Assembly (NCBI RefSeq): GCF_021869535.1
Contig: NW_026262604.1
Span: 46,004,001-46,068,000 of the forward strand
Origin: Mytilus californianus
Lineage: Eukaryota
Direction: 5' to 3'
DNA length: 64,000 nucleotides
The first letter of the stretch is position 1, and every line of letters begins with the position of its first letter. Below are positions 6,237 to 50,119 of the stretch, piece after piece. The notes under the pieces are model-generated. The model did no database searches and had not been told where the DNA came from. It worked only from the letters and a program-made list of their open reading frames with translations. The translations under genes were made by a program, and so were the position numbers.

Positions 6237-7419
6237 AGAAGTGGGACATTTAAAGACGTATCGCATCTGTATCTGATACGTTGACGTATATGAACGTATC
6301 TATTGGTTATTGTTAAAATACATGTAGCAATCGAGAATAGGGAAAAGAGTTGGGGAAAAAAGTGAAAGGTTGATGGCTTTTTTTGGTCTCTTTCATTTTT
6401 AATATACCTGAATTGTCTTTTAACAACTGTTTAATAGATGTATTAAATGTGTGTATGTACTTGCTTCTTGTCAAAATCCTGACTTCTTGTATCTATTGTT
6501 ACATTTATTGCCCTAAACGTTTCTACGATAAATTATATATTTACAGTACCTATAATACAATTATGAAAGCACGGACCAGTGGCGGATCCAGAACTTTTCA
6601 TAAGGGGGGGGGGGGGGGGGGGGGGGTCGCTGACTGACCTAAGGGGGGGGCTCAAGTCATGCTTCAGTGATTCCCTATATAATCAACCAAATTTTTCCCA
6701 CGAAAGGGGGGCCGGGCCCCCCAGCCCCCCTCCCCCCCTGGATCCGCCTATGTGGACAACAGCAGAAGCTAACATCTACACACATTTAACAATCACGTGT
6801 TTTTCGTGTCAATCTATATACTTGTATATGTTTTAGCACTCGATATTTAAATGATTAGAACTACCCAGGTGTGAAGCTGAATTATAAAACAAATGAAGTT
6901 AACGTTGACTATATTTACGCGTACTTTAAATTTGCTTATTAATGAATCATTCAACATCAGCAGAGTCGGATTGGTGACTGATACCAATTTTAATACATTT
7001 AGCAGGCAATACTTTTTCAAATATTAAAAATGAAAGAGAACAAAAATTTTCATCACCCTTTCCCTACTTTGTTCCTTCTCTTATCCCTGTTCTCGAAATT
7101 GTTATCACAGTTTTTTACTCAATCATTAACTATATCTGCATTAGTATCATTCAAATTCATGCCTGAAAAGTGATGATCGATGGTTTAAATATCTAGTGTT
7201 TAGATATTTAAGCGAGTAAACATAAATTGAAAACTATCGTGTAATAAAAAGAGTGTATTAATGACCGAAAGACATCTAACATGAAATAAAAACAACAACA
7301 CATAAACATGTACTATTTTAAGACGTAAATAATCAATTTTAAGCAATAACCCATAGATACGTTTAGATACGTCAACGCATCAGATACGGATACGATACGT
7401 CTTTAAATGTCCCAATTCT
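6237..7419. mobile_element. Non-autonomous TIR element (~70-bp imperfect TIRs) with 3-bp ATT target duplication
   Basis: AGAAGTGGGACATTTAAAGACGTATCG...CGATACGTCTTTAAATGTCCCAATTCT. ATT flanks both ends (6234-6236, 7420-7422). Removing the element and one ATT restores the LINE reading frame YQHSYFPASITLWN. Confidence 0.85.
6577..6752. mobile_element. GC-rich MITE (CAGTGGCGGATCC...GGATCCGCCTATG) nested in the 6237-7419 element
   Basis: 13-bp imperfect TIRs with internal poly-G and poly-C tracts. No clean TSD (cggac/tggac). Confidence 0.75.
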
Positions 7420-8474
7420 ATTTCCCAGCATCCATAACATTGTGGAACACTTTATATATTATTATTAGACAGATTCCTACATTTTCATTATTCAAAAGCA
7501 AATTGTATATGTTATACTATAAGAGTAAAAAACCTCCAAGACATTTTTACTCTGGAGACCGCTTACTATCTGTATTACATGCAAGGTTGCGGTACCATTG
7601 TAGCACTCTTCAATCAGATTGTTTAATGCAAACTTAGTACAAGATGCCAATTGTTTATGTGGCCTCATCAATGAAGATGCTAAACATTATTTATTATATT
7701 GTAACAATTTTTCATCGCAAAGGCTTTTAATGATAAATGAAATCAATGTTTTTGCTGTCAATATTACAATTGAGTTATTGCTCTCTGGTGATGAGTCTTT
7801 GAGTTCTGAAGAAAATTATAGTGTTTTTCTTTCTGTACAAAAGTATATAAAAAGTACCAAGCGTTTTTCTCAACTTTGACAACTTTATTCTGTAACAGAT
7901 CTTACTAGAACATGATCAATGTATGCTCTTAGGGGTACGATAATCGAATATTCTTTATGAATGACTTTTGTATTCTGCTTCAACGTTTCAATTGATTTAA
8001 GTAAAAAACAAAATTGATACTTACAATTACGTGTAGATTTATTCCGTTTTCCTGTTAATCCGTAACTATAAACTATGAGTGTGTAATTTACATTTAAACA
8101 CATTCACTCACATGACTTGTCATGTACACTAACATATTTTATTTTACACAGCTCGGTGTGTTTGTATTTATTTCTTCTGAAAATAGGCGCATTCGATTGG
8201 TTATATTAAGTGGTAAATATCCATTGATTCAATTCTTAAAATTTGTATGTAATTTATTTTTATATCTTCACGCTAAAATAATAATTGGTTAAAGTAAGAT
8301 TTATGTAATGTTCATTCATGTGTATATTTATGTATATATTAAAGAAGACGTTACTAAGTTGAAAAACTTGTGTCTAATCCATTTGTCATTTTTGAACAAT
8401 AAAATATGTTTAAACTTAAAAAGGCCAGGAACTGTCAACCGATGTCAAAATCATGATTATAGAATTATTACAGA

Positions 8475-11805: not shown

Positions 11806-12940
11806 TGTGTTCTATGTTATGGTGAGGTTGAAGAGTTACCGAATGTCGTTATCACAATCACGTCCTCTTTTTTTCCGAATATGACCTACCAAATAAGACA
11901 TATCTGGGCAGACCGAATCAAGCAAAAAGCATGTTTAACCCCGACAAATTGGTCGTTGTTTTTTTTTTTATCATTTTTACTGTCTCACATTTTTGTCATC
12001 CCATGGCCTTTGATAGCTTAAAATATAGACGGGGTTTGTTTATTTTTGAAAATCGTACAATTACCTGTAGTTATTCGTACCCTGCGTATTTGTTGCTTAA
12101 TCGAAGTTGGTCTATTTCGCAATTATACTATATCTCTATTTGTATACTAATTATTCTATACGACTACAAACGTGTTCCTCCAAACTTGATTGTTATGAAG
12201 GGCCGTTCGGGTCATAAAAAATGTTTTTGTTTTGTTACACGTACGCTAGAGGTACGCGTAACAGATCGTTCATGTACCCTAAAGTTACACGTAAGACGTT
12301 GTTCACGTACCCTACAGATACACGTAACACTTTGTTAACGCACCCTACAGTTACGCGTAACTATTTGTTCACGTAGCCTAAAACTACACGTAACTGTAGG
12401 GTGCGTTAACAAAGTGTTACGTGTATCTGTAGGGTACGTGAACAACGTGTTACGTGTAACTTTAGGGTACATGAACGATCTGTTACGTGTACCTCTAGCG
12501 TACGTGTAACAAAACAAAAACATTTTTTATGACCCGAACGGCCCTTCATAACAATCAAACGTGTTTGGAGGAACACGTTTGTAGTCGTATAGAATAATTA
12601 GTATACAAATAGAGATATAGTATAATTGCGAAATAGACCAACTTCGATTAAGCAACAAATACGCAGGGTACGAATAACTACAGGTAATTGTACGATTTTC
12701 AAAAATAAACAAACCCCGTCTATATTTTAAACTATCAAAGGCCATGGGATGACAAAAATGTGAGACAGTAAAAATGATAAAAAAAAACAACGACCAATTT
12801 GTCGGGGTTAAACATGCTTTTTGCTTGATTGGGTCTGCCCAGATATGTCTTATTTGGTAGGTCATATTCGGAAAAAAAGAGGACGTGATTGTGATAACGA
12901 CATTCGGTAACTCTTCAACCTCACCATAACATAGAACACA
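11806..12940. repeat. Long inverted repeat (fold-back): two ~555-bp arms, ~98% identical, ~25-bp loop
   Basis: 11806-~12359 is the reverse complement of ~12385-12940. The ORF track gives the same peptide on opposite strands (11931+ and 12527-). Confidence 0.95.
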
Positions 12941-13435
12941 ACACCTATGCTGAATAACCTTTATTCCCTATGCACAATGAACTCGTCTGCTGGAGAATAC
13001 TATTTGACCAATCAAATCAGGCCTTTTTTACAACATTTTAAAAGAACGATGCAAGTACATTTTTAAATAATGTAAAACGAAATTTTAATGGCTGCGTTTG
13101 AGAGGTTTTGTATGCAGATTACGTTAGTGACGAAAAGTTATCATGTGTCATTTTTATTCTGTGACTAATACAGATTTGAACCTTAATGATCGGTTAATTT
13201 TGCGAAATTTGAATTGATTGGATAAAGAAATGATGTTGACACAGATAATCCATTATTCAGGGAAAGGGATGACAGGTTTTCTGTTGCTGTTAGCTGCACA
13301 AATAAACAGCTACGCGTATCTCCAGGGTACGTGAACAGACAGGTACGCGTACCTCCAGGGTGCGTGAACAAACTGTTACGCGCACCTCTAGCGTACGTGT
13401 AAGAAAATGATTTATGACCCGTACGGCCCTTCATA
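12194..13435. mobile_element. Non-autonomous DNA transposon, probable IS3EU type, with ~30-bp subterminal repeats
   Basis: TIRs TATGAAGGGCCGTTCGGGTCATAAA / TTTATGACCCGTACGGCCCTTCATA, flanked by GATTGT (12188-12193) and GAATGT (13436-13441). Paralogous empty sites read TTGATTGTTGTGCATG (e.g. ~37149, ~52864). TAY..RTA ends with a 6-bp TSD are the IS3EU signature. Confidence 0.6.
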
Positions 13436-15494
13436 GAATGTTGTGCATGTTAACATTATTCGTAAGTTATGATAATTTGACCAGTTTGTCATCAAGAAAT
13501 AGACATCATGCAGTCAACATTATCAAGGCCAGGTGAAGTTGTATGAATAAAATCGTGATTTCATAGCGGATTTGCGTTGTAGAAAAACAGAACAAGTTCA
13601 AATTAACTAGGATAAATCTATTCTAAATATATAATACAATTTGTTTCATGAGTCAGTTTTCACCTGCTTGAAAAATAAAATAAAATGTATAATTACAATG
13701 GAAACAAGGGTGCCTTTTGATTTATCCAGTGTTCGACCAATCAGTTAATATCATAGTGTTTTAAATGGGTGTTTCTATTGATCCTGTATTACGTTCAGGT
13801 ACAAGTATTGGGTCGAGGTAAGCTGTAGTGGCACCTTCATTAACAAATAACTTAAAATAATCACCAAAAACTAACTGAAGATGAACATGACCGTAAGAAG
13901 ACTCATGCAGAATCAAAATGAACTATTTGGGTTAATTATCATTTTAATTCAAGGAATGTCGAATTATCCTTAGAAGTAATATTATGCGATGAATTATCCT
14001 TTTATTTGCCTGGTAAATAACTCCTTATTGTCTTTTGAGCCTTATCGACTTTTACACATTATCTCCCGTCAAAATGACGTCACTGACGTATGTAAACAAA
14101 ATGGCAACGGCCAGGTGAGAAGTCCATGGACTAGAGTGACGAAGAAACAAGTATTTGAAATCCATCTGGTACCAAGGATAGCTTTCATAAAATGCGCTTT
14201 TCAGAGCCATCATTTGTTATATATATGAGGCATTTTAAGTCACAAAACAATTCTCTGACGTAAGTGTTTTGACAATTTGTTCCTACAGTAAGACATGTAC
14301 AAGAGTGTCTTTAACATTTATGTTCAATGAACGAAAGGCCCTTTGGCATATTTTGAGCGTGACAAATGAACTGATTCCTCGAAAAACCAATTGCCGTCCT
14401 TTAATAGGTAATTGATTAATCTTGGTTTTACTACAATTTATCGAGTAAAAGAGTTAAAAAAGATAAAATTAATGCGGATTTCATCAAGTGCACTCAACTG
14501 TCAATAAGAGAGGTACAACATAATGAGAATCTATGCTACTAAGTAATGCATGTCGATGATTGTAGACGAAGGACGTTAAATTATTCATGGCTTACAAGAC
14601 TTAGTGTTATATATAATCTTACAAACAAGCATGTGTGAAGGCTGACAAGTCTCGTATATATAAAGATGAATCTTAAAACAATTTACACCTATCATATTTG
14701 CTTTAGTTCATGTTGTAGACTCTTCTCCTAATGGCTTCTCAAGTTAATGGTTCGAATGTGGTCTTCGAAGAAGGGATTGCTAATTTTTCCAACTCCTTGT
14801 ATAGCAAACTAGACAGAGCTGGAAATGAATTCATTTCGCCATACAGTATCACGTCAGCATTGTAACTCCTGATGCTTGGAACTGGCAAAACGACTGAAAA
14901 CCAGATAAAGTCGGTAATTTTTGAATATGAAGAACCAAATGATATCAACCAGGGATATAAACTTCTTAATGATGAACTCTTAACGAGAACAACATCGGGA
15001 GTTGCATTGTCTATTGCAAACAGGTTATACGGCAGTAAGAGTCTAAATCTTTTGAACTATTTTTCTTCGAAAGCGTCTTCATACTATGGCAGTAATGTTG
15101 AATTATTAGATTTAGTATCGGAGGCGGAGAAATGACGATTGACAATAAATGATTGGATTTCCACAAATACAAACAATCTAATAAAAGATATGATTCCGAG
15201 AAATGTTCTTTGTTCAAACACACTATTAGTAATACCAAATGCTATGTATTTATAAAGGTTACTCGGGAACACGTGTATTTGTTTACTTTTAACACGTGTG
15301 TTTAAATCAAAACATGTTTATGTTTAATTTGATTGGACCATCAGTAAGTTATTACCGGTTTAAGTTATATCAATCATGATAACTTCATGCTAGAATTTTA
15401 GCGCTAAAATTATAATAAGATATCTAGAATTGTCATTCGAGGTTCGCCTATCCGACAGAAAGGTTCGTTTTTTCTTAAATCGCCACTTGGTAAA

Positions 15495-16271
15495 ATGTCC
15501 GAATCTTCTCCACGTCTGGAATTGAATGAAGACATACTACTCGAAGGAGATAATAGTTTACCGCCACCTAATATTCATAAAGCAGCTGATAAGTCGTCTG
15601 ATTTGGTAGATACTGTAGAGCTTTTTAAGACAATTTTAGACAGCAAGTTAGGTGAGTTGAAATCTGAACTCATACAAGAACAAGATTGCCTTAAGAGAAA
15701 AATTAAGGAGGACGTCACTCTAAAATTTAAGGGGGAAGGAAACAGAATTCAGTACACCTTTAACGAGGAATTATTAGACACTGTTAATAAACTTTCAAAA
15801 TTCATCCCTAACTCCAATACTCAAGCCTATAGATTAGTTCTTGACATAACTGATAAGATCAAAAGCCGTAATAAGAAAATACGCATAGCTGATGCTTCCC
15901 CTGCTGGTTGGGGAACCGTTAGGGAATACGAATCCAATGCCGTGGCTTCAGATTCTGAAGATGAGAGAAAGATACGACAAGCTGAGACCAGAGCTATCCG
16001 TACCTCCAAGGAGAAGTCAAAATCTCGCCAGCAACCTTACCCAAAAAATCCGCCTCGTCAACAACCTGCGGAATCTTATGGTAACCCTGCTTACGCTCAG
16101 CATTATCAACGTAATCAGCAACAGCCCTTTCGTGGGAGCTTCGCAAGGCGTGAGCCTTGCTCAATCGACACGTGCCACTACTGCAAGCAACAAGGCCACT
16201 GGAGAAAAAACTGTCCTCTTCTCGCCAGTCTCAGGTCATCCAACAGCAACTCCACAACCTACCAGAAGTAG
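15495..16271 (+). CDS. gag: Gag-like protein (258 aa) with CCHC zinc knuckle
   Basis: CHYCKQQGHWRKNC, plus the ADASPAGWGTVREYE...DSEDERKIR block typical of DIRS-group gag. Confidence 0.9.
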   Translation: MSESSPRLELNEDILLEGDNSLPPPNIHKAADKSSDLVDTVELFKTILDSKLGELKSELIQEQDCLKRKIKEDVTLKFKGEGNRIQYTFNEELLDTVNKLSKFIPNSNTQAYRLVLDITDKIKSRNKKIRIADASPAGWGTVREYESNAVASDSEDERKIRQAETRAIRTSKEKSKSRQQPYPKNPPRQQPAESYGNPAYAQHYQRNQQQPFRGSFARREPCSIDTCHYCKQQGHWRKNCPLLASLRSSNSNSTTYQK

Positions 16272-18327
16272 TAAAGTAGGGCCTGAACGTCACTCTCCAG
16301 TCATTGTGAATGATAAGTATTTAGACACTATTAATGACCAATTTTCTACATGTTTTGTTGATAACGATTATATAGAATCTTTTTTAGATCAAGTTCAATA
16401 TTTTGAAAATTGTCAGTCATATGATAAATTTAAAGGGGTGAAAGGTAGATTAGCTTGTCATGTAAAGTATTGGGAAAATATAGGTGCTTGTCCTTTTGTG
16501 CTTGATACAATAAAAAATGGTTATGTTATTCCATTTATAGATACACCTTTTAAAATGTACCACAGAAATAATAGATCAGCACGGCAGAATACTGAATTTG
16601 TCACAAAGTCAATTGAAGATTTAGTTCAAATAGGTTGCGTAATTAAAGTGCCTTTTCAACCATATGTGGTAAATCCATTGAGTGTTGCTACTCAAAAGTC
16701 CGGTAAGAAACGACTTATTTTAGATATGAGTCAATTGAATAAACACATAAAGCGCGAAAAAATAAAATTTGAGGATTGGAAGTTAGCTATACAATATTTT
16801 GACAAAGATATGTATCTGTTTAAGTTTGATTTAAAATCTGGTTATTTTCACTTAGACATATGCTCACAGCAACAGACTTTCTTAGGTTTTCAGTGGGAAG
16901 GTCAATTTTATTGCTATACTGTTTTAGCTTTCGGAATTACTACCGGTCCGTACATTTTTACTAAATGTTTGAGGCCACTAGTAAAATTTTGGCGTGGAAA
17001 CGGTATAAAAGTTGTTTTGTATTTAGATGATGGATTTGGCATGAGTCCAGATGAAAATACATGTAATGAGCAATCGTCCTTCGTAAAAAGGTCTTTGATT
17101 GATGCTGGTTTCCTTATTAACGAGGAGAAGTCTGTTTTTAAACCTGTTACCGAGTTAGAATGGTTGGGAATAGTTTGGAACTCGAAAGAATACAAATTAT
17201 CTATTACTCAACGTCGAGTTGACGATTTGATTTTCTCATTGAATGTAATTTTGGCTAAATTTCCCTATGTTACAGCTAGATCTTTAGCTCAGGTTGTAGG
17301 TAGAATTATTTCTATGACTCCCGTAATCGGAAATGTGGCTAGAATTATGTCAAAGTTCTGTTACATGGAAATTGAAAGTAGAATTGGGTGGGATATTCTC
17401 ATTACAGGGTACAAACCCGTCGAGGTTTTATCAGAGTTAAAGTTCTGGTTAGAAAATGTCACCATGATTAACTATCGTAATTTATGTCATTACAGTAAAT
17501 CTTCTGTTGTCATATACTCAGATGCTAGTAATATTGCCGCTGGTGCATACACCGTTGAATTAGAAAATAAGATTTTCCATAAGATGTGGACATGTAGTGA
17601 AACGGTACAAAGCTCCACATGGAGAGAGCTGAAAGCTATAGAGTTGGCCCTTTTTTCTTTTAAGAATAGTTTCACAGGAAAAACTATAAAGTGGTTTACT
17701 GACAATCAAAATTGTGTCAAAATTGTTAATTCGGGAAGTATGAAAGAAAATCTTCATGTTATAGCAAAATCTATTTTTTCATTTTGCATTCAAAAAGGAA
17801 TATCAATTGACATTCAATGGATTCCCAGAAAAGAAAATGAAAAGGCTGATTACATCAGCAAAATGGTTGATTTCGAGGACTGGGGAGTCACACATATATT
17901 TTTCAATTTTTTAAATGATATGTGGGGTCCTTATTCGATTGACAGGTTTGCAAGTGTCGAAAATAGAAAAGTTATGAGATTTAACTCCTTATTTTGGCAA
18001 CCTGATTCTGAAGCAGTTGATGCATTTTCTCAAGTTTGGACCAATGAAAATAATTGGCTAGTTCCACCAATTAATCTTGTGATACGATCGATTAAACACA
18101 TTATAGCTTGTAAAGCTCGAGGCACGTTAGTTGTGCCTAAGTGGATTTCTGCTGCATTCTGGCCTTTGATATTCGATAAACATCTGATTTATCAAGATTA
18201 CGTAAAAGATGTTATTGTGTTTAAAAATACTGATGGTATTTATAAGCAAGGTTCGAATAAGAATACGATATTCGGAATTGAACCGTTTGGTTCGCCAGTT
18301 TTGGCTGTTTTGCTAGATGCATCTTAG
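15892..18327 (+). CDS. pol: Reverse transcriptase / RNase H / Dam-like methyltransferase polyprotein (811 aa; true start uncertain)
   Basis: RT motifs KKRLILD, FDLKSGYFH, LAFGITTGP and YLDD (17020). RNase H motifs YSDAS, WRELKAI, FTDNQN and QWIPRKENEKAD. MT-like tail IDRFAS..N...RFNS...AVDAF..W.....LVPP...LVVPKW...FWP. It overlaps gag by 380 nt in another frame. Confidence 0.93.
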   Translation: MLPLLVGEPLGNTNPMPWLQILKMRERYDKLRPELSVPPRRSQNLASNLTQKIRLVNNLRNLMVTLLTLSIINVISNSPFVGASQGVSLAQSTRATTASNKATGEKTVLFSPVSGHPTATPQPTRSSKVGPERHSPVIVNDKYLDTINDQFSTCFVDNDYIESFLDQVQYFENCQSYDKFKGVKGRLACHVKYWENIGACPFVLDTIKNGYVIPFIDTPFKMYHRNNRSARQNTEFVTKSIEDLVQIGCVIKVPFQPYVVNPLSVATQKSGKKRLILDMSQLNKHIKREKIKFEDWKLAIQYFDKDMYLFKFDLKSGYFHLDICSQQQTFLGFQWEGQFYCYTVLAFGITTGPYIFTKCLRPLVKFWRGNGIKVVLYLDDGFGMSPDENTCNEQSSFVKRSLIDAGFLINEEKSVFKPVTELEWLGIVWNSKEYKLSITQRRVDDLIFSLNVILAKFPYVTARSLAQVVGRIISMTPVIGNVARIMSKFCYMEIESRIGWDILITGYKPVEVLSELKFWLENVTMINYRNLCHYSKSSVVIYSDASNIAAGAYTVELENKIFHKMWTCSETVQSSTWRELKAIELALFSFKNSFTGKTIKWFTDNQNCVKIVNSGSMKENLHVIAKSIFSFCIQKGISIDIQWIPRKENEKADYISKMVDFEDWGVTHIFFNFLNDMWGPYSIDRFASVENRKVMRFNSLFWQPDSEAVDAFSQVWTNENNWLVPPINLVIRSIKHIIACKARGTLVVPKWISAAFWPLIFDKHLIYQDYVKDVIVFKNTDGIYKQGSNKNTIFGIEPFGSPVLAVLLDAS

Positions 18328-18635
18328 ACATGGCCCTAATATATATAGATATATTTTAGCAGGCATGGTCTGTTTGTGACATGGCCCTAATATATATATA
18401 GATATATTGTAGCAGTCATGGTCTGTTTGTGACATGGCCCTAGTATATGTATATTGTAGCAGGCATGGGTGTTTATGTTGACATGGCCCTAGTATCGGTA
18501 ATGATATTGTAGCAGGCTTGGTTTTTTATTTGACATGGCCCTAGTATCTATAATGATATTTTAGCAGGCATGGTAATTTGTTTTACAGTTTATGGCCCTA
18601 GTATCTATAAAGATATTGTAGCTGGCGTTGAAATA
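18328..18635. repeat. Six ~50-bp tandem units (ACATGGCCCTA..GATATTKTAGCAGGCATGG) between pol and YR
   Basis: Units start at about 18328, 18380, 18432, 18481, 18533 and 18591. Two conserved boxes alternate with variable AT-rich linkers. Confidence 0.85.
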
Positions 18636-18740
18636 TTTGAATATATATTATATTTTACTGTGTATAGAAATCTGAAATATGCTAATAATTCGTCCTCTGT
18701 ATATGTATATAAAATGTTATTGCAATTTTACGTTTTTCAG

Positions 18741-19756
18741 ATATTTTTTCAGTAGGACATTGGTCAGACTTTAATTCACAAGTTGCCTCTAATAATGATC
18801 TCAGCAGTTTGTTCAAACAGTTACCAGAATTCCTTCTTTCGTCCAAGGCTGCGAGTACTCAGAAGAAATATAGATATGCCTTCAATTCATGGTGTAAGTG
18901 GACTAGTCAATATTCTTTTTCACCATTGCCAGCATCTCATTTACATATTTCTTTATATTTAATTCATTTGTCTGAAACTGCAAAATCGGTTTCAAAATTA
19001 AATGATGCTTTTTACGCCATAAAATGGGCACATAAATTAGCTGGCGTTGCTGATCCCAGTGAAAATAATCTAGTTGCATCTGTTCTTGAAGGGGCTCATA
19101 GAAAAATAGGTCATTCAGTTGTCAAAAAAGAACCTATCACACCGCATATTTTGAAAAATATTGTATGTAAATATGCTAATAATACTTGTAATTTAAAAGA
19201 TGTAAGAATAGCATGTATGTGTTTATTAGCCTATGCTGGCTTTTTAAGATTCTCCGAGTTAGCTAACTTGAGAAGGTCTGATATACAGTTTTCCCCTACT
19301 TACCTTACACTTCATTTAGTCAAGAGTAAAACTGATGTATATAGGGAAGGGAAAGATGTTGTCATTTCAAAAACAGGGAATATTACATGCCCGGTAGATG
19401 TACTTCAGCGTTATCTAAAGTTAGCTAACATTCCTGAAGAATCGAATGATTTTATTTTTAGATCTATTTGTTATTGTAAATCTTTGAATATATACAAACT
19501 TAGAAAGAGTAGTCATATTTCTTACACCAGAGCCAGAGAGTTATTGTTATCTGCACTTGACAGTTTAGGTCTTGATAAAAAACAGTTTGGCTTACATAGT
19601 TTGAGGTCAGGAGGAGCTACTGCCGCGGCAGAAGCTGGAATAGATGACCGGTTGTTTAAGAAACACGGGAGATGGAAAAGTGATAAAGCCAAAGATGGTT
19701 ATGTTAAAGAGAGTATACTCAACAGATTGTCAGTATCTAAGAATTTAGGATTGTAA
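18741..19756 (+). CDS. Tyrosine recombinase (YR) of the retroelement; probably a spliced 3' exon
   Basis: The frame is open from 18713 to 19756 and carries LRFSEL, HSLRSGGA and GRWKSDKAKDGY (R-H-R-Y tetrad). There is no in-frame ATG before ...ACMCLL. The track start at 18809 is TTG. A TTTTTCAG acceptor ends at 18740. Confidence 0.9.
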
Positions 19757-22700
19757 TTTATATTGTTTGTCCCCCCTTTTTCTTTATGTCCCTTTCTTTA
19801 TCAATCGAAGCTTTCTGTGCTGTCGGGGCGAGCTGATAACCAAAAACTGTGTTGAGTTTTTACTTTGTAAATGCTTTATGTTCGTTTGAAGTATTGAATA
19901 AGAACATAAATGTATTTATAAAGGTTACTCGGGAACACGTGTATTTGTTTACTTTTAACACGTGTGTTTAAATCAAAACATGTTTATGTTTAATTTGATT
20001 GGACCATCAGTAAGTTATTACCGGTTTAAGTTATATCAATCATGATAACTTCATGCTAGAATTTTAGCGCTAAAATTATAATAAGATATCTAGAATTGTC
20101 ATTCGAGGTTCGCCTATCCGACAGAAAGGTTCGTTTTCCCACCCACCCACCCCTTTTATTAAGACTTCATAGGAATGTGAATCAGTATGTTATGTAGAAA
20201 ATAGTTGATAAAATACATGTATGTAAATCGAAATGATTTTTTCTTCAACTTATAGAACATTTTTCTATTGTAGATTGTGTTTATATGTGATGGCAGCGGT
20301 CGATGACAGCAAATTGGACATTTGTTTATTGTTTATAATAAAAATAAGCTTTCTGTGCTGTCGGGGCGAGCTGATAACCAAAAACTGTGTTGAGTTTTTA
20401 CTTTGTAAATGCTTTATGTTCGTTTGAAGTATTGAATAAGAACATAAATTTATTTTAAAGGCACATGGAAAAAAGAATTTAACGCAAATGGCACTTCACA
20501 AAGGAACTTTTTCGTGAGAGCGAACGAGCAAAAACTAGTTCAAATGATGTACGGTGAATTTGATGTAAAGTCTGGTGAAGACCTTACACTTGACTGCAAA
20601 CTTTTACAACTGCCATATCAAGGAAACAAGGTCTCTATGATCATTGTTTGGCAAAATTCTGGTGATGAACTCTCCGAACTAGAAAGTAAATTTACTTCGG
20701 ATAATTTCAAGACTCTTGTAAGCGGCATGAAGACACAAAAGACAATAGTACGAATTCCTAAATTTACAATGAAAAGCGAGTACGATTAAAAGCCAATTTG
20801 TACAGCGTTAGGAATAACGGAAATCTTTGACAAAAAATGCTGACTTTAGTGAAATGCTAAAAGCTGATGTTACACGCGTGCACGTTACTGATGCTCGTCA
20901 TAAAGCTTATCTTGAAGTGAACGAAGAGGGGAGCGAAGCAGCAGCCGCTACTTTGTTATCTGTATCATTTACTTCAGCAAGGATTCCTGAGCCCCAGCCA
21001 TTCCAATTTGTTGCCGATCATCCTTTCTTGTTTGTGATTCAAGATGACAAAACAGGAATACCGCTGTTCATTGGAAGGTATGCCAGGCCATAATTTCACA
21101 GTAACATATTTTTGAATGAAAACAAATGCGTACTGATCAAAATTAATTAGAACCTGTTATATATTAATCAAGTACTTGACTTTACGCAAAGATTTTTACG
21201 AAAGTGTATACATATCTGTCTTAATATACACATTGTGCACATGTAGGTTTTTATACCTATCTGTGTGGATACACACCTTGGTTTTTGTATAACTAAATAC
21301 TTTATATTTGAATAATTTTGGATATTTTTGTAATGATCTGTCTGTAAATAAACACTAATAAAAAGTTAGTTTGTGGTTTCAAATCTTTAGTAAAACATAA
21401 ATGTTGCTTTTCCTTGAAGTTTGTTTTATTTGATTTTTTTCTCATAATGTTTGTTTGCTTTCTCAGTATCATAAGCATCAAAAGCCGTGGTCCTGTTTTG
21501 TATGGAATTATGTTTAATGTGCCATATATCTATTGATATAGGTTGATACATGGATAGAAAATCAGATCTACGATATCCTTTTTGAATACCCTGCGATGGC
21601 CATGCGTCCACATCGTAAGACAACCTAAGTTTCTATTTAGATTGTGATAATTTCAAAGGAGACAAGCAATATTAGAAGGAAAATTGAATTAAAATAGACG
21701 GCAACCATGCCATGACAGCATGTTATAAATAATAAACAGGAGGCAGCAAGAAAATTTTGGGAAATATGGGGCTTTATTGTCCTGAATATTGCAAAAAGCA
21801 CTGAGAGCAGCAGGGTGAAATATGTTTTGAAGATTTTATGCCACAATCTTATTTTTTAGATCAAAATAGGCATACTCTGTTTATGTCCGAAGTTATTCTA
21901 CCACTTGGTGTTTAAAATGATATGGATTTTTAACCTTCTTTATCTACATCACTAGAACAAACTCAAACAGGAGTTACAAACACAGCTAGCGCATCAGATT
22001 TATCGCGACAAAATTTTTCTTTGACATGAAATTTTATTATACAATAGTAAATGGATTTAAGTCTTAAATGGTAAATTTTATGTTAACAACATCTGAAAAG
22101 TCTGAATAATGAATTACTCAGTCATATTCAGTCGTTCGGTCAATTTGTAGAAGACATGTCGACAGCAGTTAATTTAGTACTGCTCATAAAATGCTTGCAG
22201 TCAATTCAGTATTTTGTAAATGTGTACATTTAAATCACAATTACTGAACCATCTGAACATAGACTGAACATATCTTAAGTGACAGCACGCAAATTGTCTG
22301 AACAGTAGTGAAATAACTGCAGTGCATCCGTCTGAAAATTGAACTAAATGATTGACAATTATTTCATAAAAGATAGGCGAAAGATACCAAATGGACATTC
22401 AAACTAATAAGTTGAAAATAAACTGATAACGCCATGGCAAAAAAGGGAAAAAAAGACCAAAAGACAAACAACAGTACACAAAACACACTACGAATTTTAT
22501 TTTTCGGTCTTTTAAGAACTGTTTATATCACGCTTACTGTTTCAGATAAGATTGGACTACTAGTGGCTATATTATGTAATACGTCTACGCATCTTCACAT
22601 GAATAATGAAAAAAATACCAACTGAAACGATTTCACAATATCAATACGACAGTAAGATTTATTTAGCAAACTGAAAAGATACTTACACATTATTTTCTTT

Positions 22701-22919: not shown

Positions 22920-23300
22920 ATCACAAACATGCTTAACCCTGCCAAATGTGCCCGTCCCAAACCTTGAGCATGAAATCCACTTGTTGTCATTAGTTAGTCT
23001 CTAAAATGTTTTCATGTACTTTTTTCGTATAAATCGGCCATTGGTTGTTTTCTACTGTTTTACATTTTGTCGTCCCATCGACTTTGGATTCACAAACATG
23101 GTTTACCACGCCAAAGATGTCGTCCCAAACCATAAAGATGTCGTCCCAAACCATAAAGATGTCGTCCCAAACCCTGAGCATAAAATCCACTTGTTGTAAT
23201 TATTAAATGTCTGCAAAATATTTAAAATACTGTTTTCGTATAGATCGGCTATCATTTTTTTAACTTTTATACATTTTGTCGCCTTTTGTCATCTCAAAGC
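22920..23300. repeat. ~170-200-bp spacer tandem units (paralogous blocks at ~46490-46860 and ~52130-52700) with an internal 21-bp x3 repeat at 23113-23173
   Basis: CAAACATGTTTAACCCCGCCAAATGTGCCC... recurs 2, 2 and 3 times in the three spacers. AAAGATGTCGTCCCAAACCAT x3 occurs only here. Confidence 0.75.
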
Positions 23301-25238: not shown

Positions 25239-26399
25239 ATGGCTTCTCAGGTTAATGGATCGAATGTGGTCTTCGAAGAAGGGATTGCTAATTTTTCCAA
25301 CTCCTTGTATAGCAATCTAGACAGAACTGGAAATGAATTCATTTCGCCATACAGTATCACGTCAGCATTGTTACTCCTTATGCTTGGAACTAGCAAAACA
25401 ACTAAAAACCAGATGAAGTCGGTAATATTCGAATATGAAGAACCAAATGATATCAACCAGGGATATAAACTTCTAAATGATGAACTCTTAACGAGAACAA
25501 CATCGGGAGTTACATTATCTATTGCAAACAGGTTATACGGCAGTAAACGTCTAAATGTTTTGAACACTTTTTCTACGAAAGCGTCTACATACTATGGTAG
25601 TGCTATTGAACTTTTGGATTTTGTGTCGCAGGCGGAAAAATCACGACTGACAATAAATGATTGGATTTCAAACAATACAAACAACCGAATTAAAAATATG
25701 ATTCCAAAAGGTGTTCTTAATGCAAATACTTTATTTGTAGTAGTAAACGCTATATATTTTAAAGGTATGTGGAAAACAGAGTTCAACAGGAATAACACTA
25801 CACAAAGGAACTTTTTCGTGAGAGCGAATGATCAAAAGCTGGTTAATATGATGTACGGTGAGTTTGATGCAATGTCTGGTGAAGATCTTTCACTTGACTG
25901 TAAGGTTTTGCAACTACCGTATAAAGGAAACAAGATCTCTATGATCTTTGTTTTGCCAAATTCTGGTGATGGACTCTCGGAACTAGAAAATAAACTTTCC
26001 GTGGATAATTTCAAGACACTTGTAAGCGGTCTGAAGACACAGAAGACAATAATAAGAATTCCCAAATTTACAATGACAAGCGAGTACGATTTAAAGCCAA
26101 TTTGTACGGCGTTAGGTTTTACGGAAATCTTTGACGAAAAAATTGCAGACTTTAGTGAAATATTCCTAGCTAATGAAACACGCGTGCGCGTGACTGATGC
26201 ACGTCATAAAGCTTACATTGAAGTGAACGAAGAGGGAAGCGAAGCAGCAGCTGCTACTACAATTACTATTGGAGTGACTTCAATACAGGATCCTAAACCC
26301 CAGCCATTTGAGTTTGTTGCTGATCATCCCTTCCTGTTTGTGATTCAAGATGACGAAACAGGAATACCGCTGTTCATTGGAAGATATGCCAGGCCATAG
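25239..26399 (+). CDS. Intact intronless serpin B (386 aa, intracellular/leukocyte-elastase-inhibitor-like)
   Basis: Motifs ISPYSITSAL, NAIYFKG.W, LPY.G, IPKF, hinge EVNEEGSEAAAAT and signature [13 protein letters not shown]. No signal peptide. RCL TITIGVT-SIQD. Confidence 0.95.
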   Translation: MASQVNGSNVVFEEGIANFSNSLYSNLDRTGNEFISPYSITSALLLLMLGTSKTTKNQMKSVIFEYEEPNDINQGYKLLNDELLTRTTSGVTLSIANRLYGSKRLNVLNTFSTKASTYYGSAIELLDFVSQAEKSRLTINDWISNNTNNRIKNMIPKGVLNANTLFVVVNAIYFKGMWKTEFNRNNTTQRNFFVRANDQKLVNMMYGEFDAMSGEDLSLDCKVLQLPYKGNKISMIFVLPNSGDGLSELENKLSVDNFKTLVSGLKTQKTIIRIPKFTMTSEYDLKPICTALGFTEIFDEKIADFSEIFLANETRVRVTDARHKAYIEVNEEGSEAAAATTITIGVTSIQDPKPQPFEFVADHPFLFVIQDDETGIPLFIGRYARP

Positions 26400-26630
26400 T
26401 TTAACAGTAACATGTATTTGACATTGATTTTGAACAAAAATAGTATAAAATATGTACCAGAAATATTGGTTATTTTTATTTTTACATTTATAAAATTGAA
26501 CAGTTATTGACATGCATAAATAATTTCCTGCTCAGATAGAAAAATAAACGCTATACATTTAGATCTGCTTTACCTGACATGTTGTTTAATTTGTTTTGTT
26601 TCTTATGATGTTTGTTTGCTTTATCTGTCC

Positions 26631-26808
26631 TGAACAAAAATGAAGCAAAGCAACAGCTCCTACTACGATAACTGTTGGAAGGATTACCTCAGTACGGGAA
26701 CCTAAGCCCCAGCCATTCCAGTTTTTGGCAGATCATCCTTTCCTGTTTGTGATTCAGGACGACGAAACAAGAACACCGCTGTTTATTGGAAGACATGCCA
26801 GGCCATAG
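26631..26808 (+). pseudogene. Orphan serpin RCL/C-terminal remnant B'
   Basis: Translates as ..[52 protein letters not shown]. It starts abruptly at the degenerate VNEEGS codons, with no upstream serpin body. Confidence 0.9.
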
Positions 26809-29800
26809 TGTCACAGTAACATATGTTTGACTTTTATTTTGTACAAAACTAGTAAATAATATGTACCTGAAATACTGATAATTCTTATCTTTACTTTGAT
26901 ACAATTAAACATTTAATATCATGCATTATTAGTTTGCTGCTTAAAGATAAGAAAAATAAAATAAAACGCACTCAGCTCGTTAATAAAAACTTCGATTTTA
27001 TGTTCCGATCGTAATAAAAACAAAACTTACTATTTTTTAATCAATTGAATGACTTCACGCAAGTTTGTTTAGGGGATATATGAATATATGTCTTAATATG
27101 CATATCGTATACAGCTATCTGCCTTGATGCACACAACGTGTAGATATTTTTGCAGGACTAACTTTGTTTATTATTTTCAACACTGATTGGATTTTTATAT
27201 AAGGTTTTACCTGTAGATAAACACATGTTATACATGTTATAGGTAAGTTGTAGCATGCGTCACCTTTGCAAGCTTAAATAAGAAATAAGTGATGTACATT
27301 TATACTTGCTTTACCTCGCATTTTATTTGTTTTGTTTCTTATGATGTTTGATTGATTTCTCTGTGTTGTAGATAAGTAATATGAAAGAATAAATGTTCTG
27401 TTCCTATTCACAACTGAAGTACACTTTACACAATCTTTCCCGTAATCTTCAAAAGTTGTAGTTATTTTTCTGGGACTGTTTTAAAAGCTTTATGACTTTC
27501 TTGATAGAGGGTCATACATCAATTGGAGTCAGTTCTTCAACATGAAACTAGGTATTTTAATGTAATCCTCCTATACAAAACGATGACCATGCTTCCACAT
27601 CGTGAGACAATTTATTATTTTTTAATTGTAATGATTTATTAGCAGACAAGAAATATTTGACGAAATCTTCAATTACAAAAGACAGAAAATAGGCAGTGAC
27701 AACATGTAATAAGTGATAGGCAGATACAAATGAAAGGGGGGACGTAATGATCCATAAGGTTAAAAATAACGCAGAGAACAGCACAGTGAAATATTTATTT
27801 GTTTACGATTTTATGCCACAATTTTTCTTTTTTTTTATGAAAATTGGGGTTACGCTCTTTACGTCCCAACCTCTTGATTCTACCAAGAGTGGTTTAGAAT
27901 TTTAATTTTCCAATCTATATCACCAGCGCATAATTACACAGAAATTACAAACACAACTAGCACATCGGCTCTATGGTTACTGCATTTACATGAAATCAAT
28001 ACTATATAATACCACATACAACAACGTGTGCACACTTTTTGAGGAATAATGACAAGTGAAATATACGTGTTTATTTCCGTGTTTATTTCTTTATGTAGAG
28101 ATCTTGAACTTCTAGACCGGTCATGTGATTGAACTGTACGATTTCATAGGCTGTTTTTGGGGCAATAGATTTAAACGGAAAAATGGTAACAGTTCAGCGA
28201 AGACAGCTTATAGGATATTCTTGAATAAAGATAAATACAAGCTGTAAAAATTAGAGAATATCAATATAACAATACGATTTTTCAAAATTAGTTTTTTTAG
28301 CCAAATAGAAAGATACTTACACTTATTTACTCTCTTAACAACAATATAACACAGACAAAACAATGTGTGATAACTAAGGTTTGGTAAAACTATCAAATGG
28401 GTGGGTAGACAATTCCAACAAGCTTTAATGTACGAGCTTTTTGAAATGATTTGTTATCTAACATAGCTTTTCATCACAATTTTGGGTATTTTGCGAAATC
28501 AATGATAGAAATTTCGAAGATAATTGATTGTTTGGTGAGAAAAGAAATTCTTGATTTGTAAGTTAAATGTTAAAAATATTAAGATAATTACAAGCACTTC
28601 AAAACAGTCTTCACGTAAACCGACTAAGAAAAAGATACTTCATAAGAGAGAACCAATGGTACATCTTCATTCAGATAAAGGGAAATTAAATATAAAGACA
28701 CCAATCAATTCTTGCTTGTGGATATTTCTCGAGGTCAGTATACAGTTTTAAACATTTGACATGTATATATACAAACGTGAGGCGGAAGATACAAAACGAT
28801 ATTCAAACTCATCAGTGGATTAAACCTGAAAAGACCACGGCAAGAAACATAAAAAAACGACAAAAAGACAAACAGCAGTATACAAAACACAACATAAAAA
28901 ACGAAATACTGAGCAACACGAACACCACAACAAATTGTTGGTGATCTCAGGTGCTCCGGAAGGGTAAGCAAATTCTGCTGCATGTATGTCAAACTTATAA
29001 TCGGTCAGAGTATACACTAACAAATAAATAAAGATACTATCAAACATCTATCTGCGTTTGACATCAAATTTTTCAAAAAACCAAACACATTAGAATATTT
29101 ACGGAAGATATCAACTTGCCAGAGTCTTGATCATAAATTGCACATGCATATGTGGCGGATTTAAATTAGTTTTTGACTGAGTGGAATAGCATGGCGATTG
29201 ATGCATGCATAACAGCAATTGTTATGCCTTCTACTCATCTGGTCTTGCTCCTTCTGCAGTTCATGTGATTCCCTAAATTTATTTATTTATTTATTTATTT
29301 TCATTTGTCTCTTCTTGATTGATTTACGAGATTTTCCATCGATTAACTGCTGTCGTCTTAATTTAAATCCCAGTACCTTCCATGCATGTTCCATGTTCAA
29401 TGTAATATATCTTGACCATTTTATTCGTTTTTGTTTGTCTTTAATTTTACGACTCCAAAATATGTATTTGCTGGTTCTCCGCTTTGCATAATGCAATTAT
29501 TAGCAAAATCAAAAATTGGTTGATTTGGAGTCATAATCACATAAATGTTCTATGTGGTGTAACATGTCTTCAATGTCGACTGTCACGAAATGTAAAAACA
29601 CATCACAGTCTAGTTAAGAGTGTCGGTCCAAATGTCCACACAATATATAATAAGAAAGGAAACAATTGTGCTTTTCTTTTGATTCAGTTTTCGATCAGTC
29701 AATTAATAGGCATTTGTATTAATATTGGAAGTTTGATGTATTGATCTCCTTCAAACTCCAAAAAAATTCTTTCGGTCACTTCGACGCTTGACTTATGTGA

Positions 29801-31037: not shown

Positions 31038-32269
31038 ATGGCTTCTAAGGTTAAACAATCGAATGTGATCTTCGAACAAGGGATAGCTAATTTTTCCAAC
31101 TCCCTGTATAGCAAACTAGACAGAACTGGAAATGAATTCATTTCGCCATACAGTATCACGTCAGCATTGTTACTCCTTATGCTTGGAACCGGGAAAACGA
31201 CCAAAACCCAGATGAAGTCGGTTATTTTCAAATATCAAGAACCAAATGATATCGACCAGGGATACAAACTTCTTAATGACGAACTCTTAATGAGAACAAC
31301 AACCGGAGTTACATTATCTATAGCAAACAGGTTATACGGCAGTAAGCATCTTAATCTTTCGAACACTTTTTCTACAAAGGCGACTACATATTATGGCAGT
31401 GGTATTGAATTCTTGGATTTTAAAACGGAGACGGAAAAGTCACGATTGACAATAAATGATTGGATTTCCACAAATACAAACAATCGAATTAGAAATATGA
31501 TTCCAAAAGGTGTGTTTAACGAAGATACTTTATTAGTAGTAGTAAACGCTATTTACTTTAAAGGTACGTGGAAAAAAGAGTTCAACAAGAAAGACACTTC
31601 ACAAAGAAACTTTTTCGTGAGAGTGAATGATTGAAAGCTAGTTCAAATGATGTATGGTGAATTTGATGCAAAATCTGGTGAAGACCTGACACTTGACTGC
31701 AAGGTTTTACAACTGCCATATCAGGGAAACAAGATCTCTATGATCTTTGTTTTACCAAATTCTGGTGATGGACTCTCAGAACTAGAAAGTAAACTTACCA
31801 CGGATAATTTCAAGAAACTTTTAAGCGGTTTGAAGACACAGAAGACAATGATACGAATTCCCAAAATTAAAATGACAAGCGAGTACGATTTGATACCAAT
31901 TTGTAAAGCGTTAGGTTTAACAGAAATCTTTGACGCAACAAATGCGGACTTTAGTGGAATATTCCAATCTAACGAAATACGCGTGTGCGTGACTGATGCA
32001 CGTCATAAAGCTTATATTGAAGTGAACGAAGAGGGAAGCGAAGCAGCAGCTGCTACTGCGATAACTGTTGGATTTAGAACAACATCAGTAAAGGATCCTA
32101 AGCCCCAGCCATTTCAGCTGCTACTACGATAACTGTTGGAAGGATTACTTCATTACAGGAACCTGAGCTCCGGCCATTCCAATTTGTTGCAGATCATCCT
32201 TTCCTGTTTGTGATTCAGGACGACGAAACAAGAACACCGTTGTTCATTGGAAGATATACCAGGCCATAG
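31038..32269 (+). pseudogene. Serpin pseudogene C with two RCLs in tandem (second RCL, C', at 32115-32269, out of frame)
   Basis: In-frame TGA at codon 199 (31632). RCL1 AITVGFR-TTSVKD is fused to ..[29 protein letters not shown]...GRYTRP* in another frame. Confidence 0.92.
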
Positions 32270-34211
32270 TTTAACAGTAACATGTGTTTGACTTTTATTT
32301 TGAACAAAAATAGTATATAATATGTACCAGAGATACTGGTTATTTTTATTTTTACATTGATACAATTGAACAGTTAATAGCATGCATAAGATATTTCCTG
32401 CTAATGAATGAGAAGAATAAAATATCTGGTTGATAAGAACATAGTTGGAACCATCGTAATAAGAACAACTTTCATTTAACAATCAGTGGACTGATTTCAG
32501 GCAAGTTGTTTAGAGGGTTTATGAGTATTTGTCTTAATACACCCATCGTATACACCTATCTGCCTTGATGCACACCATGAGTAGGTTTTTTTGCAAAACA
32601 ATCTGTTTTTATATTCAACAGTTGTTGGATTTTTGTGAAAAGTTCTACCCTTACATAACTAACTGCTATAAGCAAGTTTGTAACATGTGTCACCTTTTAA
32701 GTAAAAGATAAGCGCTGTACATTTAGGTATGCTTTTCTCTGCTTGTTATTTTATTTGTTTTGTTTCTTATAATGTTTGTTTGTTTTATTCGTCTTGTATA
32801 TATGTAATATAAAAGAATAAATTGTTAGTTTATTATTCAAAACTAAAGTACATTTTACACAATCTTTCTCGTGACCTTCAAAAGTTGTGGTCATGTTTTG
32901 CTTGGAATTGTTTTAAAAGCTTTATTCCTTTCTTGATAGAAGGTCATACATCGATTGTAGCCTGTTCTACGACACCAAACTAGGTACTTGAATATAACCG
33001 TACGATACAAAACGATGACAGTGCTTCAACATCATGAAACAATCTAAGATTTGTTTTAACTGTAATGATTTATAAGCAAACGAAAAATATTTGACGAAAA
33101 CTTGAATTACAATAGATGGAATACATGCAGCGACAACATGTAATAAGGGACAGACAGATAAACAAGAGGAAAAACAACATTTGATGAAAAGGCGGACGTA
33201 ACATATTATAAGAGATAGGCAGATACACATACGTAAGAAAGGCTGTCTAATGAAAAGGTAATTAATGATCCAGAATGTTAAAAATAGCGCCGACAGCAGC
33301 ACAGTGTAATATTTTATTTTACAATTTTATATCACAATCTTGTTTGTTTTTGATGAAATAGTGGCGTACGCTCTTTTCGTCCATCCTCCTGATTCTACCA
33401 CTTGGTGGTTTTAGTTTTTTACCCTTCCCATCTATTAAAAGTAAAATAACAAAAGTACGACGTCTTGAATACCGAATGAGTTGGGAAATGTATATCCCAT
33501 ATGCAGGTGACGTTGGTATATTGTTGTTTATAATTTCAAAATTAAAATCGTCGCGTTTGTCATAGATTTTGGTACTTAGATGATCGCTTATTCGAGGTAT
33601 GAGTCTATATCACCAGCGCACAATTATACAGAACTAGCAGATCGACTCTATTACGACAAAATTTACATAAAAAATCAATACTATACAATACCACATACAA
33701 TAACGTGTGCAAACCATTACAGGATTAATGACAATAAATGTGTCCGTGTTCATTTTATTAGAGACAGGTCATTAATTTTTAGACCGGTCAACTGAATGAT
33801 CTGTACGATTTGAATGGCTGTTTTAGTGCAATAGATTTAAACGTAAAAGTGTATATTTTTGAATAATGAAAAATACAAGCTGTAAAAATCAAACAATATC
33901 AATCAATATAACAATACGATTTGTCAAAATTTGCGTGTTTTTTTTTTTTAGCCAAATAGAAATATATCTACACTCATTCACTTTATTAACAGAAATAACA
34001 CACAGAAACTATTATGTGATAACTAACATTTGGTAAACATTATCAAATGATTGGGTAGACAATTCCAATAAACTTGGATGTACGAGCGGTTTTGAAAATG
34101 ATTTATCTAACATAGCTTTTCATCATAATTTTAGGTATTGATGCAAATGCCATGATACAGTATGATAAATTTTTTTAAGTCCCTAAATCTATGATAGAAA
34201 TTTCGAAGATA

Positions 34212-39892: not shown

Positions 39893-41035
39893 ATGGCTTC
39901 TCGTGCCAATGATTCGAATGTGTTCTTCGAAGAAGGGATTGCAAATGTTTCCATCTCCTTGTATAGCAAACTAGACAGATCTGGGAATGAATTCAATTCG
40001 CCATACAGTATCACGTCAGCATTGTTACTCCTCTTGCTTGGAACTGGCAAAACGACTAAAATTCAGATGAAGTCGGTAAGTTTTGAATATAAAGGACCAG
40101 ATGATATTAACAAGGGATTTAAACTTCTTAATGATGAACTTTTATCGAGAACAACATCGGGAGTTACCGTATCTATTGCAAACAGGTTATACGGCAGTAA
40201 GCGTCTCATTCTTTTGAACTCTTTTTCTACAAAGGCATCTACATACTATGGTAGTGATGTTGAACTTTTAGATTTTGTATCGGAGGTGGAAAAATCACGA
40301 TTGACAATAAATGACTAGATTTCTACAAATACAAATAATCGAATAAAAGATTCCGAGAAATGTTCTTATGTTCTATTAATAATAGCAAATGCTATTTACT
40401 TTAAAGGCACAATGGAAAAATATTTTTAACACAAATGACACTTCACAAAGAAACTTTTTCGTGAGAGCGAACGAGCAAAAACTAGTTCAAACGATGTATG
40501 GTGAGTTTGATGCAAAGTCTTGTGAAGACCTTATACTTGACTGCAAGGTTTTACAACTGCCATATCAAGGAAACAATATCTCTTTGTTTTGCCAAATTCT
40601 GGTGATGAACTCTCCGAACTAGTAAGAAAACTTACCATTGATAATTTCAAAACACTATTAAGCGGTCTGAAGACACAGAAGACAATAGTACGAATTCCAA
40701 AATTTACAATGACAAGCAAGAACGATTTAAAGCCAATTTATACATCGTTTGGAATAACGGAAATCTTCGACGTAAACATTGCAGACTTTAGTGAAATGTT
40801 CAAATTTGATGTTACACGCGTGTGCGTGACTGATGTACGTCATAAAGCTTATATGGAAGCGAACGAAGAAGGAAGCGAAACTTCAGTCGCTACTACATTA
40901 ACTATTGCATTAACTTCGGTAAGGGTTCCTGAACCCAAGCCATTTCAATTTGTGGCAGATCGTCCTTTCATGTTTGTGATTCCGGATGACAAAACAGGAG
41001 CACCGCTGTTCATTGGAAGATATGCCAGACCATAG
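39893..41035 (+). pseudogene. Serpin pseudogene D
   Basis: TAG at codon 142 (40316) and several small frameshifting deletions. Altered hinge EEGSETSVAT. RCL TLTIALT-SVRVPEP. Confidence 0.95.
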
Positions 41036-48974: not shown

Positions 48975-50119
48975 ATGGCTTCTCAAGTTAATGGATCGAA
49001 TGTGGTCTTCGAAGAAGGGATTGCAAATTTTTCCAACTCCTTGTATAGCAAACTAGACAGAACTGGAAATGAATTCATTTCGCCATACAGTATCTCGTCA
49101 GCATTGTTACTCCTTATGCTTGGAACCGGGAAAACGACTAGGAACCAAATGAAATCGGTTATTTTCGAATATGAAGAACCAGACGATATCGACCAGGGAT
49201 ACAAACTTCTTAATGATGACCTCTTAATGAGATCAACAACGGGAGTTACAGTATCTATTGCAAACAAGTTATACGGTAGTAAGCGTCTAAATCTTTTGAA
49301 CACTTTTACTACAAAGGCGTCTGCATACTATGGTAGTGATGTTGAACTCTTGGATTTTGTAACAGAGGCGGAAAAGTTACGATTGACAATAAATGATTGG
49401 GTTTCCACAAATACAAACAATTGAATTAAAAATATGTTTCCAAAAAATGTTCTTGATGAAAATACTTTATTAGTAGTAGCAAATGCTATTTACTTTAAAG
49501 GTACGGGAAAAAAGAGTTCAACAGGAATGACACTACACAAAGGAACTTTTTCGTTAGAGCGAATGAGCAAAAGCTGGTTAATATGATGTACGGTGAGTTT
49601 GATGCAAAGTCTGGTGAGGACCTTTCCCTTGACTGTAAGGTTTTACAACTGCCATATCAAGGAAACAAGATCTCTATGATATTTTTGTTGCCAAATTCTG
49701 GTGATAGACTCTCAGAACTAGAAAGTAAACTTACCACAAATAATTTAAAAACACTTGTAAGTGGTCTAAAGACGCAGAAAACAATAATTCGAATTCCTAA
49801 ATTTACAATAAAAATTTTTATAGCGTTAGGTTTAACGGAAATCTTTGACGAACAAATTGCGGACTTTAGTGAAATATTCCAATCTAATGTAACACGCGTG
49901 CGCGTGACTGATGCACGTCATAAAGCTTATATTGAAGTGAACGAAGAGGGAAGCGAAGCAGCAGCTGCTACTGCGATAACTGTTGGATTTAGAACAACAT
50001 CAGTAAAGGATCCTAAGCCCCAGCCATTTCAATTTGTGGCACATCATCCTTTCCTGTTTGTGATTCAGGATAATGAAACAGGAATGCCGCTGTTTATTGG
50101 TAGATATGCCAGACCATAG
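48975..50119 (+). pseudogene. Serpin pseudogene E
   Basis: TGA at codon 150 (49422; CGA>TGA-type), a 1-nt frameshift near 49505 and a 7-codon deletion after PKFT. RCL AITVGFR-TTSVKD. Confidence 0.95.

Follow-up and report, generated by a model that had tools for sequence, protein, structure and literature searches.

An orphan RCL cassette in a serpin array of Mytilus californianus is probably the decaying remnant of a truncated array gene

Insect and nematode serpins such as Manduca serpin-1 and Drosophila Spn4 carry mutually exclusive RCL exon cassettes, and the murine Serpina1 and Serpina3 clusters have hypervariable reactive-centre regions. Pseudogenes serve as templates for gene conversion in the chicken, with its Ig pseudo-V segments, and at the CYP21 locus, where CYP21A1P converts CYP21A2. 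The serpin cassette described here, which lies directly behind the intact gene serpin B of Mytilus californianus, bears some likeness to each of these systems. With serpin-1 and Spn4 it has in common the arrangement of an RCL and C-terminus unit downstream of a complete serpin body and on the same strand, but it has no usable donor/acceptor pair, its hinge contains a stop codon and a frameshift, it is present in a single copy, and its host gene B has no introns and is closed by a loop, a stop codon and a polyadenylation signal of its own. Like the Ig pseudo-V segments and CYP21A1P, it is a promoterless fragment beside a functional paralogue in a recombining array; unlike them, it has almost no 5' arm, it is 9–17% diverged from all other copies, and no acceptor tract was found for it. 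The surrounding array resembles the murine Serpina1 and Serpina3 clusters in that its tandem paralogues keep a conserved scaffold, diverge in their loops and show mosaic sequence relationships, whereas it belongs to a bivalve, is made of intronless genes and consists, in the window, mostly of pseudogenes. With the truncated pseudogene fragments of tandem arrays, the cassette shares the lack of a promoter and of the 5' coding part, a microhomology junction, a colinear flank, disabling changes and the company of other fragments and whole-gene pseudogenes; it differs from the usual fragments of this type in that it keeps exactly the specificity module, RCL plus C-terminus, with a loop unlike those of the intact genes.

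The window, i.e. the whole stretch of 64,000 nucleotides that was analysed, corresponds to positions 46004001–46068000 of contig C24 in the 1.65-Gb M. californianus assembly (G000), which represents a single haplotype from one animal; the arrays of mussels may well vary from one individual to the next. Searching it with serpin B (tblastn) reveals a tandem array of intronless serpin genes, all on the same strand, of which B and F are intact and A, C, D and E are broken (Table 1). Serpin B matches the Pfam Serpin profile over positions 3–370 of 370 (E = 5.8e-108) and is 82–85% identical to 386-aa serpins from M. coruscus, M. galloprovincialis, M. edulis and M. trossulus. Its nearest named relative, an M. 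coruscus protein with 85% identity (P0002), is annotated 'Protease inhibitor-like protein-B1', a name that stems from a shell-protein study, and the products of the array may be shell-matrix or mantle inhibitors rather than immune serpins. A 427-aa serpin of M. edulis (P0010, L051:47–1330) carries the motif S-N-I-[IV]-F-E-E-G-[FI]-[AT]-N-F-S three times in its N-terminus, a tandem duplication that is missing from the 386-aa paralogues. The 5.2-kb insertion that splits serpin A (window 15244–20449) lies between two direct repeats of 228 bp with 100% identity (15244–15471 and 19910–20137), and looks like a young retroelement insertion. Two further repeats were observed in the window: a 1.4-kb tandem duplication with 99.4% identity at 854–3685 (854–2259/2280–3685), and a short coding-like minisatellite at 23014–23255, with ORFs on both strands made up of repeated units such as VWDDIFM and KDVVPNH.

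Table 1. Positions of the serpin copies and of the cassette-related features, numbered within the window
Feature	Position	Strand	Description
Serpin A	14734–15252 and 20448–21090	+	Split by a 5.2-kb insertion; frameshift (tblastn with B)
Serpin B	25239–26399	+	Intact, intronless ORF, 386 aa
B flank, segment 1	26400–26548	+	+1 to +150 after the stop codon; AATAAA at 26543
B flank, segment 2	26540–26632	+	Usual place about +435 to +530 after the stop codon in the C, cassette and F units
Orphan cassette	26617–26805 (tblastn)	+	3' end only; B residues 325–386, E = 2e-22
Deletion junction	26631–26633	+	Flank joined to serpin codon ~331; TG microhomology; spacer read beside three intact flanks and two intact genes
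Cassette, decayed hinge	26633–26661	+	TGA at 26641–26643, 1-bp deletion, Ala-to-Pro codon at 26659–26661
Cassette, RCL	26662–26700	+	GRITS loop (translation)
Cassette, strand s1C to C-terminus	26701–26808	+	PKPQPF...GRHARP, then TAG stop (translation)
Cassette unit, long 3' flank	26809–28316	+	Colinear with the flank of F
Pseudogene C	31038–32266	+	One in-frame stop, one frame change (tblastn with B)
C-E identical tract	31988–32115 (C), 49903–50030 (E)	+	128 bp, across the RCL
Second GRITS-type RCL and C-terminus	32117–32269	+	In pseudogene C; 90.8% identity to the cassette coding part
Serpin D	39893–41032	+	Seven stops
Serpin E	48975–50116	+	Frameshift
Serpin F	59008–60165	+	Intact
Serpin F, 3' end and flank	60005–61656	+	Closest relative of the cassette's flank

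An earlier note on this DNA, made from the letters alone, had described an orphan serpin tail behind B. Such a tail is indeed present, with a homology and a profile match far beyond chance. The cassette (26633–26808) comprises only the final 15% of a serpin: the hinge, the RCL, the C-terminus and the stop codon. Its 54-aa ORF (26644–26805) aligns with positions 324–370 of 370 of the Pfam Serpin profile PF00079 with E = 2.3e-10 and 40.7 bits, above the cut-off of 27, which places it in this family as a C-terminal part. At the DNA level, the cassette aligns over about 310 bp with the 3' ends of B, C and F, with 81–86% identity, and forms direct repeats of 319 bp, with 81% identity, with the 3' end of B. 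No serpin homology is detected upstream of 26633: only the last ~58 codons are present, in place of a complete inhibitory fold of ~370 residues. With 176 of 1161 nucleotides kept, about 85% of the gene is gone; the missing 5' part had been recognized correctly in the earlier note, and its size, put there at ~90%, is slightly smaller by measurement. The position 26631 given for the start of the cassette proved accurate: the flank homology ends with ...CTGTCCTG at 26632, and the serpin homology begins with (G)TG|AAC, at the Val-Asn codons that precede the hinge. The spacer of 231 bp between B and the cassette (26400–26630) is B's own 3' flank, collapsed as the earlier note had supposed: two segments of the flank are joined together and the ~300 bp between them are gone. 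The first segment is 86.8% identical to the flank of C and 79.5–79.7% identical to those of the cassette and of F, and the second matches 32704–32796, 27283–27364 and 60618–60703 at 79–84%.

The hinge of the cassette is strongly degraded. Within 33 nt, it carries six substitutions and one deletion, in a stretch that is identical in B, C and E and differs at two sites in A. It reads N-K-N-E-A-K-Q-Q in one frame and stop-S-K-A-T-A-P-T in the frame of the loop, so that the consensus E-E-G-S/T-E-A-A-A-A-T is absent in frame with the loop. Comparison of the cassette with its counterpart in pseudogene C gives a pN/pS of 0.68 over 147 nt and of 0.38 over the last 96 nt, against about 0.2 for B versus F; these values, based on very few changes, suggest a relaxed constraint. 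A point against a non-functional fragment is that the 54 codons past the TGA still form an open frame and that conservation is good in the C-terminal half, but this is not significant at such a low divergence. When the 54-aa ORF was sought among proteins of 30–95 aa, no candidates were found, a search that is not informative on full-length proteins.

The loop of the cassette reads TITVGRITS, hereafter the GRITS loop. As had been claimed, it occurs in no intact gene of the window; it is not unique, however, as pseudogene C contains a near-identical loop. A pattern search of the whole 1.65-Gb genome located the loop DNA at two sites, both broken: the cassette and, within pseudogene C, 32132–32155, with 2 mismatches in 24 nt. 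No intact protein with the GRITS loop is encoded in the assembly, and the loop is absent among the retrieved close homologues from five Mytilus species, in which the corresponding loops read TITVGITSVQD, TITVGFASVQD or similar. An exact-pattern scan for the loop DNA among metagenome contigs gave no match, which is uninformative because mussel DNA is unlikely to be present in them. The two copies also share a derived ETRTP motif in their C-termini. Counted from the hinge, the GRITS loop would have Arg at P2 and Ile at P1, and the loop of E would have Arg at P1.

In pseudogene C, the GRITS-type loop comes after another loop. GCTGCTACT is found at both 32049 and 32117, at a distance of 68 bp, so that C contains one additional loop copy of this length; its GRITS-type loop and ETRTP C-terminus are read out of frame with the preceding first loop. 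The tract that is identical between C and E contains this first RCL and stops precisely where the GRITS-type RCL begins. It covers 34 consecutive matching polymorphic sites, a run whose length was reached in none of 2000 permutations (p < 0.0005), in two copies that are elsewhere about 85% identical. In the simplest reading of these sequences, C would be a former full G-type gene, i.e. one with the GRITS loop and ETRTP C-terminus, in which an out-of-register conversion from E or from an E-like copy left both loops in place. We also considered that C could once have had the gene-spacer-cassette layout of B and later lost the spacer, but this less simple reading requires an extra conversion to account for the grouping of the flank of C with that of B rather than with that of the cassette.

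The two flank affinities proposed in the earlier note both hold. The flank of the cassette is 86.5% identical to that of F, and the flank of B is 85.6% identical to the one behind the second RCL of C, while the cross-pairs show 77–81% identity. The segment 26642–28316 matches 60005–61656 at 81.5% and remains colinear with it over 1.7 kb. In 150-bp windows taken downstream of the coding part, the cassette is nearer to F (mostly 83–90%) than to C (46–84%) in eight cases out of 10, the two exceptions being located near 27532 and 27744. The flank of B is 77–80% identical to that of the cassette, which is no nearer than to the flank of F or of any other unit except C (85.6–86.8%). Because the DNA downstream of the cassette is colinear with that of F and nearer to it, the cassette appears as the tail of a separate array unit and not as a copy of the tail of B, in line with the earlier view of a remnant of an array unit, here one that is deprived of its 5' 85%.

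The coding part and the flank of the cassette do not have the same relatives. In an alignment of four sequences, the tail of B itself, the cassette, its counterpart in C and the tail of F, six informative sites of the coding part put the cassette with that of C and one supports the flank grouping, while nine informative sites of the flank put the cassette with F and B with C and none supports the coding grouping. This discordance gives p = 0.0009 by Fisher's exact test and p = 0.001 by max-chi-square permutation; the alignments are short and the split was picked after viewing the data, a choice that the permutation takes into account. Trees including the copies of sister species recover the same two groupings, with supports of 99/98 for the cassette and C in the coding part and of 100/98 for B and C in the flank, and the four flanks of M. 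californianus group in a single clade that excludes those of the other species. As the two parts group differently, recombination shuffles the 3' ends of the array. The G-type module has come to lie on two flank backgrounds through one or more crossovers or conversions, the breakpoint falling between 26770 and 26810. The recombination that had been supposed to affect the RCL and C-terminus module in this array is thus significant, at the stop-codon breakpoint (p about 0.001) as well as in the C-E tract described above. In serpin E (window 49950–50700), a loop and C-terminus of type 1 (PKPQPF) are followed by a 3' flank of type 2, the kind found behind A and D. Among 16 copies from four species, E alone breaks the association between loop type and flank type; this mosaic marks another breakpoint near the stop codon.

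Serpin fragments are a recurrent feature outside the window. Upstream of it (G000:C24:45988955–45992738), an intact serpin with 74% identity to B is followed, ~2 kb downstream, by a 5'-truncated piece. The latter covers residues 148–386, contains nine stops and represents a larger analogue of the cassette. In M. edulis, contig L050 carries two pieces on either side of an intact gene (7377–7709 and 12661–13142, residues 276–386 and 214–386, respectively), and a 5' piece is present at L051:5007–5460 (residues 1–156); one of the 3' pieces from this species has an intact hinge and the loop TTITFSATSVQD. Because both 5' and 3' pieces occur, these fragments fit unselective debris. Among ~14 sampled genes from three sister species, namely those of M. 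trossulus, M. galloprovincialis and the second M. edulis assembly, no orphan piece was found behind the gene.

Several other readings of the cassette were weighed. Its location directly downstream of B and on the same strand, the frame open from 26644 to the stop codon and the pyrimidine-rich run in front of it are what an alternative 3' exon of B would show, which would give B an additional RCL isoform, by analogy with the insect genes serpin-1 and Spn4; to this reading we grant next to no probability. We combined each GT in the last 500 nt of B with each AG lying ahead of the cassette or within it: all in-frame GT..AG joins dropped strand s5A and the hinge or else doubled the loop, and no donor is present between the hinge and the loop of B. 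This enumeration, together with the AATAAA of B (26543), a polyadenylation-like hexamer located upstream of the cassette, leads us to reject a role as an exon, and the analogy with the alternative RCL exons of insects drawn in the earlier note fails on the same splice-site geometry. In addition, the TGA at 26641–26643 is in frame, and the pyrimidine-rich run is ordinary flank sequence that is also found behind other units. There is a single cassette rather than a series, tblastn detecting one behind B and none behind F, A, D or E, and no such piece lies behind the ~14 genes of the sister species. The 90% identity protein cluster of B has a single member, which is weak evidence only on products that would use the cassette. 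The 3' end of B, from the hinge to about +530, could instead have undergone a partial tandem duplication, with an equally non-functional copy as the outcome. This would likewise produce a junction between the end of the flank and the hinge, as well as the direct repeats of 319 bp with 81% identity. We regard such a duplication as unlikely, since the coding part is 90.8% identical to C versus 84.6% to B and the flank 86.5% identical to F versus 77.1% to B. Moreover, a duplication predating the array predicts a cassette behind F, which has none, and joint inheritance by B and C predicts that the flank of C goes with that of the cassette, whereas it groups with that of B.

The earlier note had assigned to the cassette the role of a standing donor, whose loop would be copied to the intact B and F scaffolds by conversion or unequal crossover in the conserved flanks and would thereby diversify protease specificity. 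The identical C-E tract that spans the RCL, the stop-codon breakpoint between the G-type coding sequence and two different flanks, and the pairing of a type-1 loop with a type-2 flank in E are consistent with such exchanges. A GENECONV-like run test also gives nominal tract signals between the cassette and F (p = 0.013) or E (p = 0.012), but these fail correction for six comparisons. The donor role is nonetheless most improbable in our view. An intact acceptor with the GRITS loop is absent from the genome and from the retrieved Mytilus proteins, B and F are each alone in their 90% identity clusters, and the cassette, 9–17% diverged from all other copies, shares a near-identical tract with none of them. 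Its geometry also seems unfavourable: on the 5' side of the loop, only ~30 nt of decayed homology with 7 differences are available, the long arm being the 3' one, formed by the C-terminus and flank. A crossover in this arm would leave the loop unmoved, and a tract spanning the hinge would bring in the stop, the frameshift and the proline. The earlier note would have settled for simple deletion debris if the loop were never found on an intact scaffold and no conversion tract were significant: the absence of an intact GRITS scaffold speaks for debris, yet the array does display significant recombination signals. It is conceivable, though improbable, that the RCL and C-terminus module behaves more generally in Mytilus serpin arrays as a recombination unit that travels among scaffolds and flanks and breaks at the hinge and at the stop codon, and that promoterless remnants keep loops that could be re-installed on intact scaffolds; the GRITS loop would then be expected on a B or F scaffold in some haplotypes of M. 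californianus. The literature on Mytilus serpin loops and on serpin gene conversion yielded nothing specific.

Our preferred reading, which we hold to be probable, takes the cassette for a serpin pseudogene fragment that is truncated at its 5' end and devoid of function, i.e. decaying deletion debris in a recombining array. The cassette has the attributes of a truncated array pseudogene: it is a partial gene, it is colinear with its relatives in the flank, it carries disabling changes and similar fragments exist around it. Its anatomy, junction, decay and mosaic make-up are shown by the sequences, as is the lack of an intact GRITS gene in this assembly; we infer that it arose by deletion, not by duplication, and that it has no function. 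The ancestor would be a G-type array member, recognizable by the loop TITVGRITS and by ETRTP in its C-terminus. The promoter and the first ~330 codons of this gene would have been lost along with the intergenic DNA in a deletion of several kb, which would have joined the 3' flank of B, at its position of about +530, to the Val-Asn codons in front of the hinge through the TG microhomology. A second deletion of roughly 300 bp would have shortened the flank of B. Situated past the polyadenylation signal of B and with no in-frame splice onto this gene, the remnant has since been decaying, and pseudogene C is the only other trace of the G-type module. Unequal crossover or gene conversion has exchanged 3' ends among the array members, the breakpoint lying at the stop codon; because of these exchanges, the cassette carries a C-like coding part on an F-like flank.

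The evidence at hand makes the cassette ordinary debris of the array. If it were true that such remnants feed loops to working serpins, they would offer a germline, DNA-level route to new protease specificities, and this route would concern an invertebrate immune or shell-matrix inhibitor family. The locus itself is a well-resolved case of 3'-end shuffling in a bivalve serpin array, with a stop-codon breakpoint, a loop tract common to C and E and a failed loop replacement in C, and the array gives the population genomics of mussel presence/absence variation a concrete locus to phase.
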